DNA of 64,000 nt from positions 2,598,165 through 2,662,164 of the forward strand of contig CAJFCJ010000005.1 in assembly GCA_904063045.1 (NCBI GenBank), given 5' to 3'. Below, piece by piece: positions 2,171 through 8,244 of this stretch. The translations under genes were made by a program, and so were the position numbers. Positions within the stretch are counted from its first letter, which is position 1, and each line of letters starts with the position of its first letter. The notes below the pieces were generated by a model. That model had not been told where the DNA came from, ran no database searches, and worked only from the letters and a program-made list of their open reading frames with translations. The stretch is from Dimorphilus gyrociliatus. Its lineage: Eukaryota; Animalia; Annelida.

Positions 2171-3294
2171 TTATTGAATATTAGTTTCCAAAGAACTTGC
2201 TCCAGTGACATTTTCATCAGATACTCGAATCTTCTTACATCGATACCTTTGAATTTCTTTACGAAAACTTTTATTCATAACCACAAAAATAAAGAAATTT
2301 GTTCCAGAATTTAATGATGTTGATAAAACGGAAAAACGAAATAAGATGCTCATTCCTCTTAGGCATTCTCTACTATCATGCAACGAGAAACTCAATTCGA
2401 AATATGCCATTAACACTCTTATTGCTTGGATTGAATGAGTAATGAGAAAGCATACGTTTATTGTAATAAGAGATTTTGTCAAGCTTGAATGCCTTATTCG
2501 TAGCCTTTTATTTAAAGTCTAAAAGATGATGATAAATGAATATATACATATTGAGTATTTTTTAACTGATAACGTTAACGTTAACTTACCTTTACAATCG
2601 ATATTGTCATAAATGAAATTAGAATTGAAGGTAGAATTAATTGTAAAACCCATTCTTCAAATATTAAATATATTCGATAGCTTTTATATTTTTTGATTAA
2701 AAATGATTTCATAAGCCATTTATTTATTCTTGAATTAAATTCAAGGTGAAAATCCCATCCTCTCACTATACTTAGTAGAAATGATGTTATGATAATAAAC
2801 GATTGACTTATAATTGTTTTCGTTAAAGTAAATAGTTTACTACGAATTGGATGACAAACACCTAAATATCTTTCGAAAGTTATTAATACCGTTTGCCAAA
2901 TGGTGGATAAAGCTGCAATGTTATATAAAGGAATACCAATTCTAGCGTTGAAATATGTAAATGTTTTATTTGAATAGCCAATATAAATAAACAAGTGACT
3001 TATACCAAACATAGTACAATTTGATAGTAAAAACAAACAATCAGCTAACTCCAATCCAATTAATAAATAGATAGTATTAGATCTATTTATCCCAGATAGG
3101 AAAATTATAATTGATAATAGATTTAATATTATCCCAAATATGCAAATGAAACATATTATAGTTCCAAAGATTAACGTTGATATGAAAGTACAAATCTCAG
3201 AATCATCTGTTATGTTAAAAGACATAATTTCCAATGATGATTTTATATGGAATAAACTTCCTTTTATATATTGTGTATAATTGGCTTTTTTCAT
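2171..3294 (-). CDS. Class A peptide GPCR (FMRFamide-receptor-like), 2 exons
   Basis: The two ORFs join through a GT-AG intron at 2589..2519 (SIVK|TLNKRL). Seven hydrophobic segments, TM1 GIILN, TM2 LELAD, FERYLGVCHP (DRY variant), TM7 NSGTNFFIF. Start is ATG 3294 or 3225 (MSFNIT, with an N-glycosylation sequon). Confidence 0.85.
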
Positions 3295-3870
3295 TATTGC
3301 CACAGACGACACTAGCAGTATTTATATTGTCCATAGAAAAACTTATAATGAAATGAAGACTGAATGTGTGAAATATAATCTACAAAGAAAGATAAACTTT
3401 TCGCTCAAAAAGCCTACTTTCATCTAGTATTTGTTGATCATTTAACATTCTTTATAACTTCCATTGAAGATACTGTTTAACTCTCAGAATTTCCGTCTTT
3501 TTTTCTTTATTTTACTATGTCATTAGTATATTTTATACGAACTTCCCAAGTTTCAAGTTTTCTAACAGTTTACTACTGTCTTTCTTTTTATTTAGTAATT
3601 TCTACTTTATAAAAGTTTCTGACAATTTAGATGAATAATACTTAAAAGCCTAACCTCGTCGACAATAGGTTGAATATAAGTCTACCGATTCAAAGCTCAT
3701 GAATTATTAAAAAAAGAATTCCTTTTTTATTCATAAAGTGGTACTGGAAAACCTATAACGTGATATGAGAGTTAGTGACCTCTAAAAAGTGTACTATATC
3801 TGTTTCGTCGTTATTAGTATGGTCTTGAACAATCTAGAAAACTCTGTCATAACCCAGTAGTATTTTGGAT

Positions 3871-5777
3871 ATGAAAATCTTATCAAGATATTTCTATTAT
3901 TCTCTCTTTTTAGCTGTACAAGGACCACCGATAAACTGTGGAACTATCCCTTCCAAGTTTGGTCTGGCAGCTTCGAAATATTCTCATCAGGAAAATACCG
4001 ATGTTTACTTTATTAATCTGGAAGCAAAAACTTATAAGGTAAGAATTCTAATTTTTTGACAATTATTATCTCTATTGTGTATTCATTATTTAGACAATAA
4101 TCTCTATCGACAAGCGAATCTACCATATAAACTATAATCCAAATGATGAGCATATATATATTTATATTAGTAGTCAATTATACAAATTCCCTTTGGCTGA
4201 CGCTATAGATAATACCATAACTGGGAATTGGAATAATTATATTATACCGACAAGTACTTCGGAGTATATATACTACCTTGCCCAATTTATCGATATTTAT
4301 GGGAACGTGATATGGTCTGGTGAAGATAGTTCTAATTCCAAAATAGCTGTATCTAGCTTGGATGGTAACCATAAAAGCGTTGTTGTAACGGGTGAAAGAC
4401 CTCTGTCTTTAGCTGTTAATCCTTTTAATGGAAAATTGTATTATTATTTCGAGGATGGTGCAAACCCAACTCACGAACTTATCAGAAGAGATCAAAGTGG
4501 AAATAACCGAGAGCTGATAATGAATGGAGTTCACATTTCATTTAGTATGGATTACAGTACAGGAACCTTATGGGTAACAAACAACGAAAATAAAGTGTTT
4601 ACGATTGATTCTTCCGATAACCTTCAAGAGATTGGGGAAAATAGTAAAATAAGAGGTAAATTGGCTGGTATTGGCCAGGATAAAACAAAGATATATTTCA
4701 GCGATATCTTCGATCCAAATATATATTCAATTCTAAAGAATGATGTATCAGTATCTGAGAAAGTTGTTTCGTTATCAAAAAGTATTGGTACACTTACAAT
4801 ATATGATTCAGAAACCCAACCATTGCAAGGTTTGTCCTCTATAACATAATACGTTTTATGTTATCCTTTTTTGTATTCTTCAGCTTCTCCTCAACCACCT
4901 TGCTATAATCAAAATCCCGGAAAATGCTCCAATGGAATATGTGTTCCCACTTCTTCGTCTACGTCTACGTGTTTATGCGATATTGGAGAAACTTGTTCAT
5001 CAGCCACGAATGATCCACATATTTTAGTGCATGTTGAAGGAATCTCTCTTCCTCTTTGTTTTGATATCGAAGGAAAGGACGGAGATGTTATTAGTCTCTT
5101 CCAGCATCAATCTTCACGGTCGGAACTTCGAGCTCAGTTAAGAGGAGATCAATATTTTAAAACCTTTTATTTTACTACTGAAGGAAATCAACTCTTTTTT
5201 ACCACTACTAAAGTCATAATTAATGGAGAAGTGGTTAGTAAATGGCCAACAACCAGACCAAAACATATAAATCTTCCAAAGTTACAAATTAAAGTAAGTT
5301 ATACGTTTTAATAGTTTGACAACTTCCTCCCAAAATTAGAAATATTTTCATCTAATAATTTAGAGCTTGGGTACTACTAAATTTGACATTGAACATTCCA
5401 AATGGACAATTCGTATTGAATATGTTCAAAAGTTCCTTCCATATCTAAATATATATCTAATAAAGTTAAACGAAGATGGCAATATTTTTGAAGGAATGAT
5501 TGGTAAATATCCAAAAATCTTATTATGAATTTTCAACATTTTCAGTCTATTTTCAGGTTCAATATATTCTCAGAATTTTACTTTATCTCTCAACCCACAA
5601 ACGAATAGTAGATCAATTATCACTGCCAAACATAAAGTACTTCCCCTGGACTATAGGCATATACAAGCCGTAAAGAGTATTAAAAGCGACATTGAATGTT
5701 GGATGACATCATCTAAAGATGAAGGACTTTATGTACAACCTTCCATTGAATATTTGTTACCTTGTATGACCTGTTGA
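3871..5777 (+). CDS. Secreted protein: signal peptide, LDLR class B (YWTD-like) beta-propeller, EGF, ITIH C-terminal domain; 5 exons
   Basis: Exons 3871-4038, 4094-4829, 4884-5293, 5364-5502 and 5557-5777 join in frame through GT-AG introns. Signal MKILSRYFYYSLFLAVQG. Propeller repeats LAVNPFNGKLYYY, MDYSTGTLWVTN, QDKTKIYFSD. EGF CYNQNPGKCSNGICVPTSSSTSTCLCDIGETC. Then DPHILVHVEGISLPLCFDIEGKDGDVISL, resembling ITIH DPHFIIHV...LCFNI...G.IL.L, with later EGMIG and ECW. Confidence 0.75.
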
Positions 5778-6008
5778 AGACATACGTGATGAAATTCAAC
5801 TGGTTAGGAGACTTATGACCGAAATTTTCTATTATAATTCTTATTGAAAATAAATAAAGGAATCAATAAAAAAAAACATTCATTCAAGTTTTTAGTTGTA
5901 TGGAAATTTTATGAAAAGAATAAATATATCGCAATTCAATGACCCCTATGTGAGTGGAGAGCCGAAAACTGTGGTTGAATGTTAAAGAGGTCACACTATT
6001 ATTCAGAC

Positions 6009-6792: not shown

Positions 6793-8244
6793 ATGGACAA
6801 AAACCAAATAAACTGTCTTATCTGCTTTAACAAAGTTGAAAGTGAGTTATGTAATAACCTTTCTTGTCGATATGGACATTTTTTTCATATTGCTTGCCTG
6901 GAAAAATTTGCACGTTTTAAACAAAAACGAAATAATGAATTTATCTGCCCAACATGTAATAAAGAGGGCACAAAGGCAAAACAGAATGTTAATACATCGA
7001 TAACTGTTGAAGATACTGACGATTCTTGCGATGAAGGTATGGATACGGAAACCCTGAAGAATAACCTTCACGACGACAACTGTAATGCAACAAATTTTGA
7101 AGAGAAACTTTTGAAAGAGATAGAGAAAATACAGGAAGATAAAAAAATTGAATTAAAGAAATTAGACCACGAAAAGAAATATTTAACGGCTGAAATTAAT
7201 AAAAAAGAGGCAATACTCAAAGAAGAATTGGAGTCATTCTATAAGGATAAGGAAACTAAAATACGTAATTTAATTGACGAGACTAAAACCTTTCAAAATA
7301 TTCAAGAAGGTATGACAAGTGCACTCTTTCAGAGTGGTCTCAATGATATGAGAGAGAAATTAATCAGTTGTATTGATCATAATATAAAGAGAAAAGCTGT
7401 ATTTAATAGGTCACAATCAGTGTTTATGGGTGAAATATTCTATCCTCATTTAGACGAACCAGCTAAACAATTCTGTATTCAATTAGATAGAATACCCACA
7501 AAAGTTGTATTTAAGAATCCAGGCTTTTACGCTCTAGTTCATATCGATGAACCTCAAAGGAGTGAAATAATTAATATAGAAATGAATAAGGTTATGATGT
7601 CATCAGAAACTGATATTGGCGATTTATCTAGAACCTATGATGGCAGACTATCATTTATATCCTTATGGAATGAAATCCCTACAATTTTCTTCTTAGATAC
7701 CTGTGGCATTGTAAATGGTTCTAGAGAGGTTTCATACTTGAATAAGAACGCTCCATTACCTTTATACTTTTATCTTAAAGATAATATCTGCTACTTTTCA
7801 ACAAGAATCTTACATGTTTATAATAAGCAGCATAATACCTACCTATTCTCTTTTATTCTTAAAGAAGATGTTAAGATATTCGATTCAAGAATAATTGAAG
7901 ATGACATCTATATTGTTGATTCTCGTCAAAAAGTTGTTTATTTCGATACAATTGGTCAAAAGATGATTGAAATTCCTATTTACTTTAAAGAAGGACCATT
8001 TTCATTCCAAAAAGATATTATATCCGAATTAAAAAATGGTAGCTTTATATTATCCAGTGGAGATTTTCTATTCTTCATTGATCCTATGGCGAAAACTGCA
8101 GTAGGTTTTAAAATGGACATAATATTTCCAGACGGTCTATTATTAAACTACTGCATGACGGATGAAGAAGTTATCTTCTGTGTAGCCGATCACGATGATG
8201 AGAGTAGACTTAAACTCAAATACTTTTCTATAAAACCTAATTAA
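6793..8244 (+). CDS. RING + coiled coil + divergent beta-rich (propeller-like) C-terminal domain, single exon
   Basis: CLIC...CRYGHFFHIAC...CPTC RING-H2-like pattern, charged coiled coil, then a beta-strand-rich C-terminus. TRIM-NHL-like layout but without a B-box. Confidence 0.7.
   Translation: MDKNQINCLICFNKVESELCNNLSCRYGHFFHIACLEKFARFKQKRNNEFICPTCNKEGTKAKQNVNTSITVEDTDDSCDEGMDTETLKNNLHDDNCNATNFEEKLLKEIEKIQEDKKIELKKLDHEKKYLTAEINKKEAILKEELESFYKDKETKIRNLIDETKTFQNIQEGMTSALFQSGLNDMREKLISCIDHNIKRKAVFNRSQSVFMGEIFYPHLDEPAKQFCIQLDRIPTKVVFKNPGFYALVHIDEPQRSEIINIEMNKVMMSSETDIGDLSRTYDGRLSFISLWNEIPTIFFLDTCGIVNGSREVSYLNKNAPLPLYFYLKDNICYFSTRILHVYNKQHNTYLFSFILKEDVKIFDSRIIEDDIYIVDSRQKVVYFDTIGQKMIEIPIYFKEGPFSFQKDIISELKNGSFILSSGDFLFFIDPMAKTAVGFKMDIIFPDGLLLNYCMTDEEVIFCVADHDDESRLKLKYFSIKPN

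Follow-up and report, generated by a model that had tools for sequence, protein, structure and literature searches.

A propeller–EGF protein of Dimorphilus gyrociliatus with a predicted, divergent ITIH-type C-terminal domain and a candidate Asp-Pro self-cleavage site

A five-exon gene and its propeller–EGF part

The window considered here, i.e. the whole stretch of 64,000 nucleotides that was analysed, corresponds to C5:2598165-2662164 of the 77.9-Mb assembly of the annelid Dimorphilus gyrociliatus, and the gene in question occupies positions 3871-5777 on its forward strand, in AT-rich DNA of approximately 30% GC. The gene comprises five exons (557 codons, from the ATG at 3871 to the TGA at 5775-5777), and all its introns have canonical GT-AG borders and lengths of 54-70 bp. 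When exon 2 was used as a phmmer query against the public representative library, it recovered a public 557-aa protein, P0020, which the exon model reproduces residue for residue, the product of exon 1 being identical to residues 1-56 and that of exon 5 to the C-terminus, and the same sequence is present letter for letter in the ESM Atlas. All analyses of the full-length protein were made with public P0020, no exons being joined by hand. The protein consists of a signal peptide (predicted, and judged by eye only), a YWTD propeller, an EGF-like piece, the residues N-D345-P346-H347 and a 213-aa C-terminal domain, which are distributed over the gene as follows.

3871-4038, + strand: exon 1, with the start codon, the signal peptide predicted there (MKILSRYFYYSLFLAVQG), Cys23 and the opening strands of the propeller; donor GT at 4039
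4094-4829, + strand: exon 2, residues 57-302, the bulk of the six-blade YWTD (LDL-receptor class B) beta-propeller
4884-5293, + strand: exon 3, with the EGF-like six-Cys piece C308-C339, N344-D345-P346-H347 and the first approximately 95 residues of the ITI_HC_C-like domain, including C360 and D362
5012-5020, + strand: codons GAT CCA CAT of Asp345-Pro346-His347, the candidate self-cleavage site, with the cut expected between D345 and P346
5364-5502, + strand: exon 4, the middle of the C-terminal domain, ending within a Gly codon of E-G-M-I-G (G-L-L-G in the family)
5503-5556, + strand: intron 4, phase 1, interrupting EGMIG
5557-5777, + strand: exon 5, the end of the domain, with the invariant C532 (in ECW), the extra C554 and C557, and the stop codon TGA at 5775-5777
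5849-5858, + strand: two overlapping AATAAA hexamers, a likely polyadenylation signal judged from the sequence

The peptide NDPHILVHVEGISLPLCFDIEGKDGDVISLFQ, quoted in the first-pass annotation of this DNA, reads exactly as given there, with the Asp-Pro-His triplet at 5012-5020, and the later motifs mentioned in the same place are also found, EGMIG across intron 4 and ECW in exon 5. Around the candidate cut the residues are ...ATND / PHILV..., the peptide spanning it being SSATNDPHILVHVEGISLPLCFDIEGK. A pseudogene or an annotation artefact was considered and is ruled out by the intact frame, the canonical splice sites and the retention of the invariant residues described below. Transcript evidence came from one public run (X1), whose type is not on record and which is represented by contigs only. 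In one of these contigs (record 6, window 5238-5504), position 5504 is followed by 10 loose letters, TCAATATATT, which are the first bases of exon 5 past its GT, as expected if intron 4 had been removed. The same contig keeps intron 3 and fits partly spliced RNA.

The N-terminal 343 residues had been read in the first-pass annotation as a YWTD-like propeller and an EGF, with no VIT or vWA domain, and this assignment held up in several comparisons. Exon 2 gave 339 phmmer matches at E ≤ 1e-3 among 1.84e9 representatives, and Ldl_recept_b was found in six of seven sampled relatives (up to 286 bits), the seventh being a YNCE-like propeller. In the ESM Atlas, the ten best language-model feature neighbours of the propeller part were all Ldl_recept_b proteins, and the predicted Atlas model of residues 26-343 superposed on the propeller and EGF of VLDLR and LRP8 clusters with a TM of 0.78-0.79. 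YWTD-like motifs recur along exon 2 (IYISS, VIWSG, LYYYF, LWVTN and IYFSD). The EGF-like cysteines are residues 308, 316, 321, 331, 333 and 339, with a short C5-C6 spacing of 5 residues, and the structural alignment to receptor propeller–EGF units extends to residue 343. Pfam Ldl_recept_b (PF00058) gave no match on exon 2 at E ≤ 10 or on P0020 at E ≤ 0.01, and Pfam EGF (PF00008) reached E 0.056 and 14.2 bits on exon 3, under its cut-off of 21.5. Since the full-length AF2 model of P0020 was poor over the N-terminal half, the propeller fold was taken from the Atlas model; folding the full-length protein from a mixed alignment of propeller relatives and C-terminal family rows was tried and dropped, as the propeller pieces were misplaced.

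This propeller appears to stand alone. No paralog of it was found in the D. gyrociliatus genome at E ≤ 1, and no ortholog among the 1.84e9 representatives, where only P0020 itself scored below 1e-30 and the next match reached 3e-18. The GDPH domain is absent from all 149 best propeller relatives.

The C-terminal domain and its family

The first-pass annotation likened the C-terminal part of the protein to the C-terminal module of ITIH heavy chains and pointed to the Pfam models ITI_HC_C and Ldl_recept_b as a check. That check failed for both: ITI_HC_C (PF06668, gathering cut-off 27 bits) did not match the exon pieces at E ≤ 10 or P0020 at E ≤ 0.01, and VWD (PF00094) likewise gave no match on the exon pieces or on P0020. 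A six-frame scan of the genome with PF06668 returned nothing beyond the canonical ITIH, at C9:527658 with 49.4 bits, and a single weak paralog scoring 16 bits, and did not pick up the 3871-5777 locus. Sequence searches of the PDB, by phmmer with exon 3 and with a profile of the family alignment, produced no meaningful match.

The relationship was brought out by the genome itself. When the half of exon 3 that bears the DPH was searched against the translated genome, 73 matches resulted, most of them ending single open frames of approximately 300 aa, and a typical paralog reads GDPHF.Q.V.D...ICYDVTG..GD ... DDYYMH ... LD ... GLLG.IG ... CWL...YP, followed by the stop. A family profile was built from 18 of these paralog domains, leaving out both the window gene and the canonical ITIH. 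Among 1,814 six-frame segments of the window, this profile ranked exon 3 first (E 4.5e-16), exon 5 second (profile positions 153-215) and exon 4 third (positions 114-154), in collinear order, and residues 344-550 of P0020 matched positions 2-214 of its 219 with 79.8 bits. By sequence, the resemblance of exons 3-5 to the family is far beyond chance. The canonical D. gyrociliatus ITIH, in which a vWA domain (VWA_3, 39.5 bits) is followed by ITI_HC_C (49 bits) and which reads ESDPHF...VCFDV...CWF, ties the family to ITIH: its C-terminal domain is matched end to end by the family profile (34.6 bits), hhalign of the family against it gave a probability of 95.8% (E 7.5e-9, 192 columns), and BLASTP of exon 3 against it an E of 6e-8. 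In three of ten paralog open frames, ITI_HC_C was the best, sub-threshold Pfam match (E 0.009-0.08), and P0004, the annotated product of one such frame, gave the same score as the frame (E 0.019).

Structure prediction led to the same place. AF2 models were confident both for residues 345-557 of P0020, with family rows only as input, and for a paralog domain (pLDDT 88.4). Compared with solved structures, the P0020 model retrieved VWD-type sandwiches only (VWF D2, MUC5AC, MUC5B, MUC2, FCGBP D10 and RGMB; Z 9.2-12.2, rmsd 2.5-3.9 Å over 125-154 residues), the next, unrelated row lying at Z 4.0, and the paralog model matched the same sandwiches only. In these alignments, P346 coincides with the first residues past the natural GD|PH cut, namely 4081 in the B chain of FCGBP D10 and 169 in RGMB. 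When predicted structures were compared with predicted structures, the nearest to residues 344-557 were an ITIH5 cluster (TM 0.83 over 209 residues) and an ITIH3-like one (TM 0.75), while the VWD domains of SUSD2, MUC2 and FCGBP were more distant (TM 0.49-0.61); the paralog model reached a TM of 0.84 to ITIH2. The three best language-model neighbours of the domain in the ESM Atlas were ITI_HC_C clusters, at 0.93-0.94. The modelled fold is nearer to ITIH than to the classical VWD, in agreement with a report of an unannotated VWD-like sandwich in ITIH3, ITIH5 and ITIH6 whose first two strands flank the GDPH (Yeshaya et al., PMC10880436). Taken together, profiles and models identify the 213-aa region as a divergent ITI_HC_C-type (VWD-fold) domain homologous to the ITIH C-terminal domain, with its Asp-Pro-His at the position of the ITIH, VWD and RGM self-cut, which bears out the likeness originally claimed.

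The Atlas neighbourhood of residues 340-557 was wider than this. Plant Root_cap (PF06830) clusters appeared in both the feature and the fold lists, and the feature neighbours included bacterial DUF1521 (NopE1-type GD|PH self-cutters). A single, very broad superfamily of sandwiches that cut themselves at Asp-Pro is suggested by these neighbours.

Conservation was assessed in an alignment of 34 rows comprising family members, the canonical ITIH and the window protein. Seven columns were invariant in all 34 rows, and all seven are kept in P0020 (D345, P346, H347, C360, D362, G482 and C532), although the rows are only 16-23% identical to it. The family motif D-D-Y-Y-M-H, in which both Asp, the second Tyr and the His are each present in 30-32 of the 34 rows, is replaced in P0020 by G-D-Q-Y-F-K (residues 389-394, window 5144-5161), and the canonical ITIH does not have the motif.

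At the level of the genome, the family profile gave at least 153 matches at E ≤ 1e-3, a lower bound, as 150 of 262 first-look candidates were scored, and approximately 75 of these cover the whole domain in one frame. The family accounts for about 1% of the loci in this 78-Mb genome. Many copies lie in tandem arrays (e.g. C6:1318402-1353107, C14:355213-391164, C11:1194790-1216893 and C5:2525951-2535890), and some are pseudogenes with stops. In the genome paper, no more than nine families are described as expanded, and ITIH and VWD are not mentioned there (PMC7854359).

The domain is attached to quite different front ends. It follows short, variable N-terminal parts in the small secreted proteins P0001, P0002 and P0004; it follows repeats of a Cys-rich unit of approximately 150 aa in genes 16-75 kb upstream of the window, where Pfam gave no match on the repeats; it ends a 1,726-aa open frame of repeated modules; and it is found behind the vWA of the canonical ITIH as well as behind the YWTD propeller and EGF of P0020. 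The module is portable, as had been proposed, with N-terminal parts of four further kinds or more joined to it in the same genome.

An indication of where the window copy came from was provided by intron 4. In the window gene and in three upstream genes on C5, a phase-1 intron splits one and the same Gly codon (G|GT) of G-[LIM]-[IF]-G (window 5503-5556; L016:1915-1977; L024:8737-8797), and in approximately 75 other family copies the domain is free of introns. The pattern points to the window gene having obtained its C-terminal domain locally, with the front end swapped. In a tree, the window domain was placed inside the expanded family and apart from the canonical ITIH, though weakly and on a very long branch, and the shared intron is the better clue to its origin than this indecisive placement. 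One neighbouring copy (L024:5744-6361, i.e. C5:2525744-2526361, + strand) has R-E-P-H in place of G-D-P-H, a natural Asp-to-Glu change at the nucleophile position, and would serve as a built-in control for cleavage.

Word-based searches were of limited value for tracing the family further. With the family profile, they returned only D. gyrociliatus proteins and Logan and JGI contigs, none of them Pfam-annotated, so that reach beyond Dinophilidae was not measurable; with the canonical ITIH exon, one close relative was found by a method too insensitive to establish reach outside the species; and with a longer first row aimed at proteins of 300-900 aa, the equally insensitive search gave one match. 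Intron-less full-length members were observed on short public contigs (a 1,250-bp contig, L029, of JGI sample 3300008040, and Logan P0005-P0018 and P0171). Each combines the GDPH domain with a signal peptide and an N-terminal part that varies, and P0007 shares 76% identity with one D. gyrociliatus copy; all are probably transcripts of D. gyrociliatus or of a related dinophilid.

Two open frames flank the gene in the window and are unrelated to it: a seven-helix-receptor-like frame at 2581-3312 on the - strand and, downstream, a 483-aa RING/B-box-type frame at 6793-8244 on the + strand.

Candidate self-cleavage and the fate of its products

Our preferred reading, to which we would give a probability of roughly 55%, is that P0020 is a secreted propeller–EGF protein whose C-terminal domain acts as a built-in, single-use self-cutting module, the resulting anhydride being hydrolysed by default. 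During secretion, the side chain of Asp345 would attack its own peptide carbonyl, helped by His347 and a strained hairpin, and the Asp345-Pro346 bond would break through a cyclic anhydride, so that the propeller–EGF part would then end in a new C-terminal Asp345. Hydrolysis would be the default fate of the anhydride, with capture by a glycan hydroxyl, as in ITIH, as the less likely branch. The cut itself appears rather likely from the conserved residues, the modelled fold and the analogy with known self-cutters: in FCGBP D10, mutation of the Asp to Ala or Asn, or of the His to Asn, blocks the cut (PMC10880436), and cleavage at GDPH yields a reactive Asp anhydride that is esterified to chondroitin sulfate in ITIH3 and hydrolysed in FCGBP (PMC8267560). 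For what follows the cut, simple release or tethering of the fragments is more probable than ligation to a glycan, which the analogy with ITIH makes possible without making it probable.

Several observations weigh against this reading. Expression support is thin, amounting to 10 junction letters in a single run whose contig retains intron 3. Pfam recognises no domain of P0020, which we regard as blindness of the models in this case rather than as negative evidence. In P0020 the Asp is preceded by N344, where 28 of the 34 rows have Gly; the Gly-Asp bond of FCGBP is cis (PMC10880436), and a non-Gly residue disfavours a cis bond. This is offset by the canonical D. gyrociliatus ITIH, which has Ser before the Asp. 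Human ITIH1 and ITIH2 also have no Gly at this position and are still processed. P0020 has, in addition, lost two residues that are nearly invariant in the family, D389 being replaced by Gly (Asp in 31 of 34 rows) and H394 by Lys (His in 30 of 34), and its domain forms the longest branch of the tree, at 3.07 substitutions per site. With the long branch and the two lost residues, it could be a relaxed or non-cutting copy.

The alternative that survives best, even if it is rather unlikely, is a VWD/RGM-style event in which the bond is cut but the fragments stay together as one particle through a shared beta-sheet, a disulfide or both. The cut would then mature and stabilise the domain, and the latter would not be a propeptide but would keep a lasting function, such as oligomerisation or binding. 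Of the experimental structures, the model matched only VWD and RGM domains (Z 9-12). Cleavage makes FCGBP D10 more stable and more resistant to proteases (PMC10880436), and the FCGBP fragments are all held by one disulfide, C472-C611, with the tethering Cys at D-5 (PMC8267560). The cysteines of P0020 lend themselves to a similar arrangement. Cys339 lies six residues ahead of Asp345, and the protein has 11 Cys, an odd count, so that one must be free, intermolecular or bridging the N-terminus to the C-terminal tail; three of them, C23, C554 and C557 (window 3937-3939, 5763-5765 and 5772-5774), two of which are at the extreme C-terminus, have no counterpart in other family members. However, the simplest assignment of Cys339 is as Cys number six of the EGF-like piece, in line with the Atlas alignment of residues 26-343 to the propeller and EGF of the LDLR family, and many members (P0001, P0002 and P0005) have no Cys near the GDPH, indicating that the family as a whole does not share a tether. 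In its fold, too, the domain is nearer to ITIH than to VWD. With a Cys at D-6 and an odd number of Cys, a cut with the fragments tethered as in VWD must be considered as open as an ITIH-style release.

It is less likely again that there is no cleavage at all, D-P-H being kept for the folding of the hairpin in a domain that serves only for binding or as a scaffold, or the gene being a fast-evolving copy in decay. The Asn in place of the usual Gly, the two lost near-invariant residues and the longest branch all suit such a reading, as do the family copies that are pseudogenes with stops and the neighbour with EPH for DPH. Against it stand the seven intact invariant columns and the five in-frame exons with canonical GT-AG borders. 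Moreover, the Asp and the His are exactly the residues that the chemistry needs, and their conservation in 34 of 34 rows at 16-23% identity would be hard to explain by the fold alone.

Less probable still, on our estimate, is the full ITIH-like reaction envisaged in the first-pass annotation, in which the C-terminal domain would be released as a propeptide and the Asp345 anhydride captured by a hydroxyl of a chondroitin, mucus or cuticle glycan, leaving the cargo ester-linked. The domain is closest to ITIH rather than to mucin-type VWD in both fold and language-model features, it is the last in P0020, without C8 or TIL modules after it, as in ITIH, and the family-invariant Cys pair lies wholly within it. 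The same chemistry esterifies ITIH3 to chondroitin sulfate (PMC8267560), and Ruperti et al. argue that ITIH and the sponge wreath domain of MAFp3/p4, for which this logic has been put forward, shed their C-terminal domain because neither has a tethering Cys (PMC11670116). On the other hand, all eleven cleaved GDPH sites of FCGBP show hydrolysis only and no adducts (PMC8267560), from which it follows that cleavage does not imply ligation. Neither an acceptor nor a transfer factor nor an adduct is known in D. gyrociliatus, the Cys at D-6 is near the D-5 position of the FCGBP tethering Cys, and the 11 Cys, with the extra C23, C554 and C557, mean that the fragments may stay disulfide-linked.

The most daring extension, that the family of more than 150 loci forms a modular covalent-decoration system in which anhydride-armed cargos (the YWTD propeller–EGF, Cys-rich lectin-like repeats and small hypervariable beta-sandwich domains) become ester-linked to mucus, cuticle or egg-cocoon glycans, is a distinctly improbable one, even if it would make protein-to-glycan ligation a general, evolvable extracellular tagging mechanism.

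Novelty and comparison with known systems

The first-pass annotation knew of no such architecture in the literature; the particular fusion is indeed new, but the general idea is not. It is already published that ITIH's C-terminal domain is a VWD-like self-cutter (PMC10880436) and that such a domain can stand behind a non-ITIH cargo (PMC11670116). What is new, as judged from the searches above, is the fusion of a propeller–EGF unit to an ITI_HC_C-type domain, which is without ortholog or paralog; the placement of the latter in the ITI_HC_C branch by modelled fold and profile, although Pfam misses P0020; and how large the family has become in a genome that is otherwise known as streamlined. Exon shuffling has here placed an ITIH-type C-terminal domain, with all the residues of the chemistry, behind a propeller of the LDL-receptor type, and the branch of the ITI_HC_C/VWD superfamily concerned is missed completely by current Pfam models.

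To our knowledge, it is only for the ITIH heavy chains that a covalent protein-glycan ester at a self-cut Asp has been firmly established, and the same chemistry serving unrelated cargos would matter. The natural cargo swaps in this very compact genome offer a tractable set with which to ask what selects among hydrolysis, tethering and glycan transfer, and a handle on roles in mucus, cuticle or immunity, with the domain itself as a possible ligation tag.

Among known systems, the LDLR family (LDLR, VLDLR, LRP8 and LRP1/2/5/6) shares the YWTD propeller–EGF unit with P0020, which differs in that LDL-A repeats, an EGF pair in front and a membrane anchor are all absent. The VWD domains with GDPH self-cleavage (MUC2, MUC5AC, FCGBP, SUSD2 and BMPER) and the RGM C-terminal domain share the sandwich fold, in which strands 1 and 2 flank the cut site, and the Asp-anhydride chemistry would by analogy be expected to be the same. 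They differ in that P0020 has no Pfam VWD match, no C8, TIL or E modules after the domain and a fold closer to ITIH, and in that their fragments are held by a defined disulfide (C472-C611 in FCGBP), for which no equivalent pair can be assigned in P0020.

The wreath domain of the sponge Aggregation Factor proteins MAFp3/p4 belongs to another phylum and another cargo, and is reported as demosponge-specific by hidden Markov model (HMM) (PMC11670116). By its published description it is nevertheless similar in its proposed cut and in a cargo for which glycan binding has been proposed, and its genes are likewise clustered, secreted and fast-evolving (PMC11670116).

The closest parallel remains the C-terminal domain of ITIH. 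P0020 departs from it in the cargo, a YWTD propeller and EGF in place of VIT and vWA, in the Asn rather than Gly or Ser before the Asp, in a C-terminal domain that stays below the Pfam threshold, and in belonging to a family of more than 150 loci whose extra motif DDYYMH is lacking in both the canonical ITIH and P0020 itself. Yet the two have in common the same beta-sandwich at the very C-terminus of a secreted protein, a domain that opens with D-P-H and goes on to L-C-F-[DN]-I, to a motif resembling G-L-L-G and, towards its end, to C-W, as well as a Cys pair internal to the domain.

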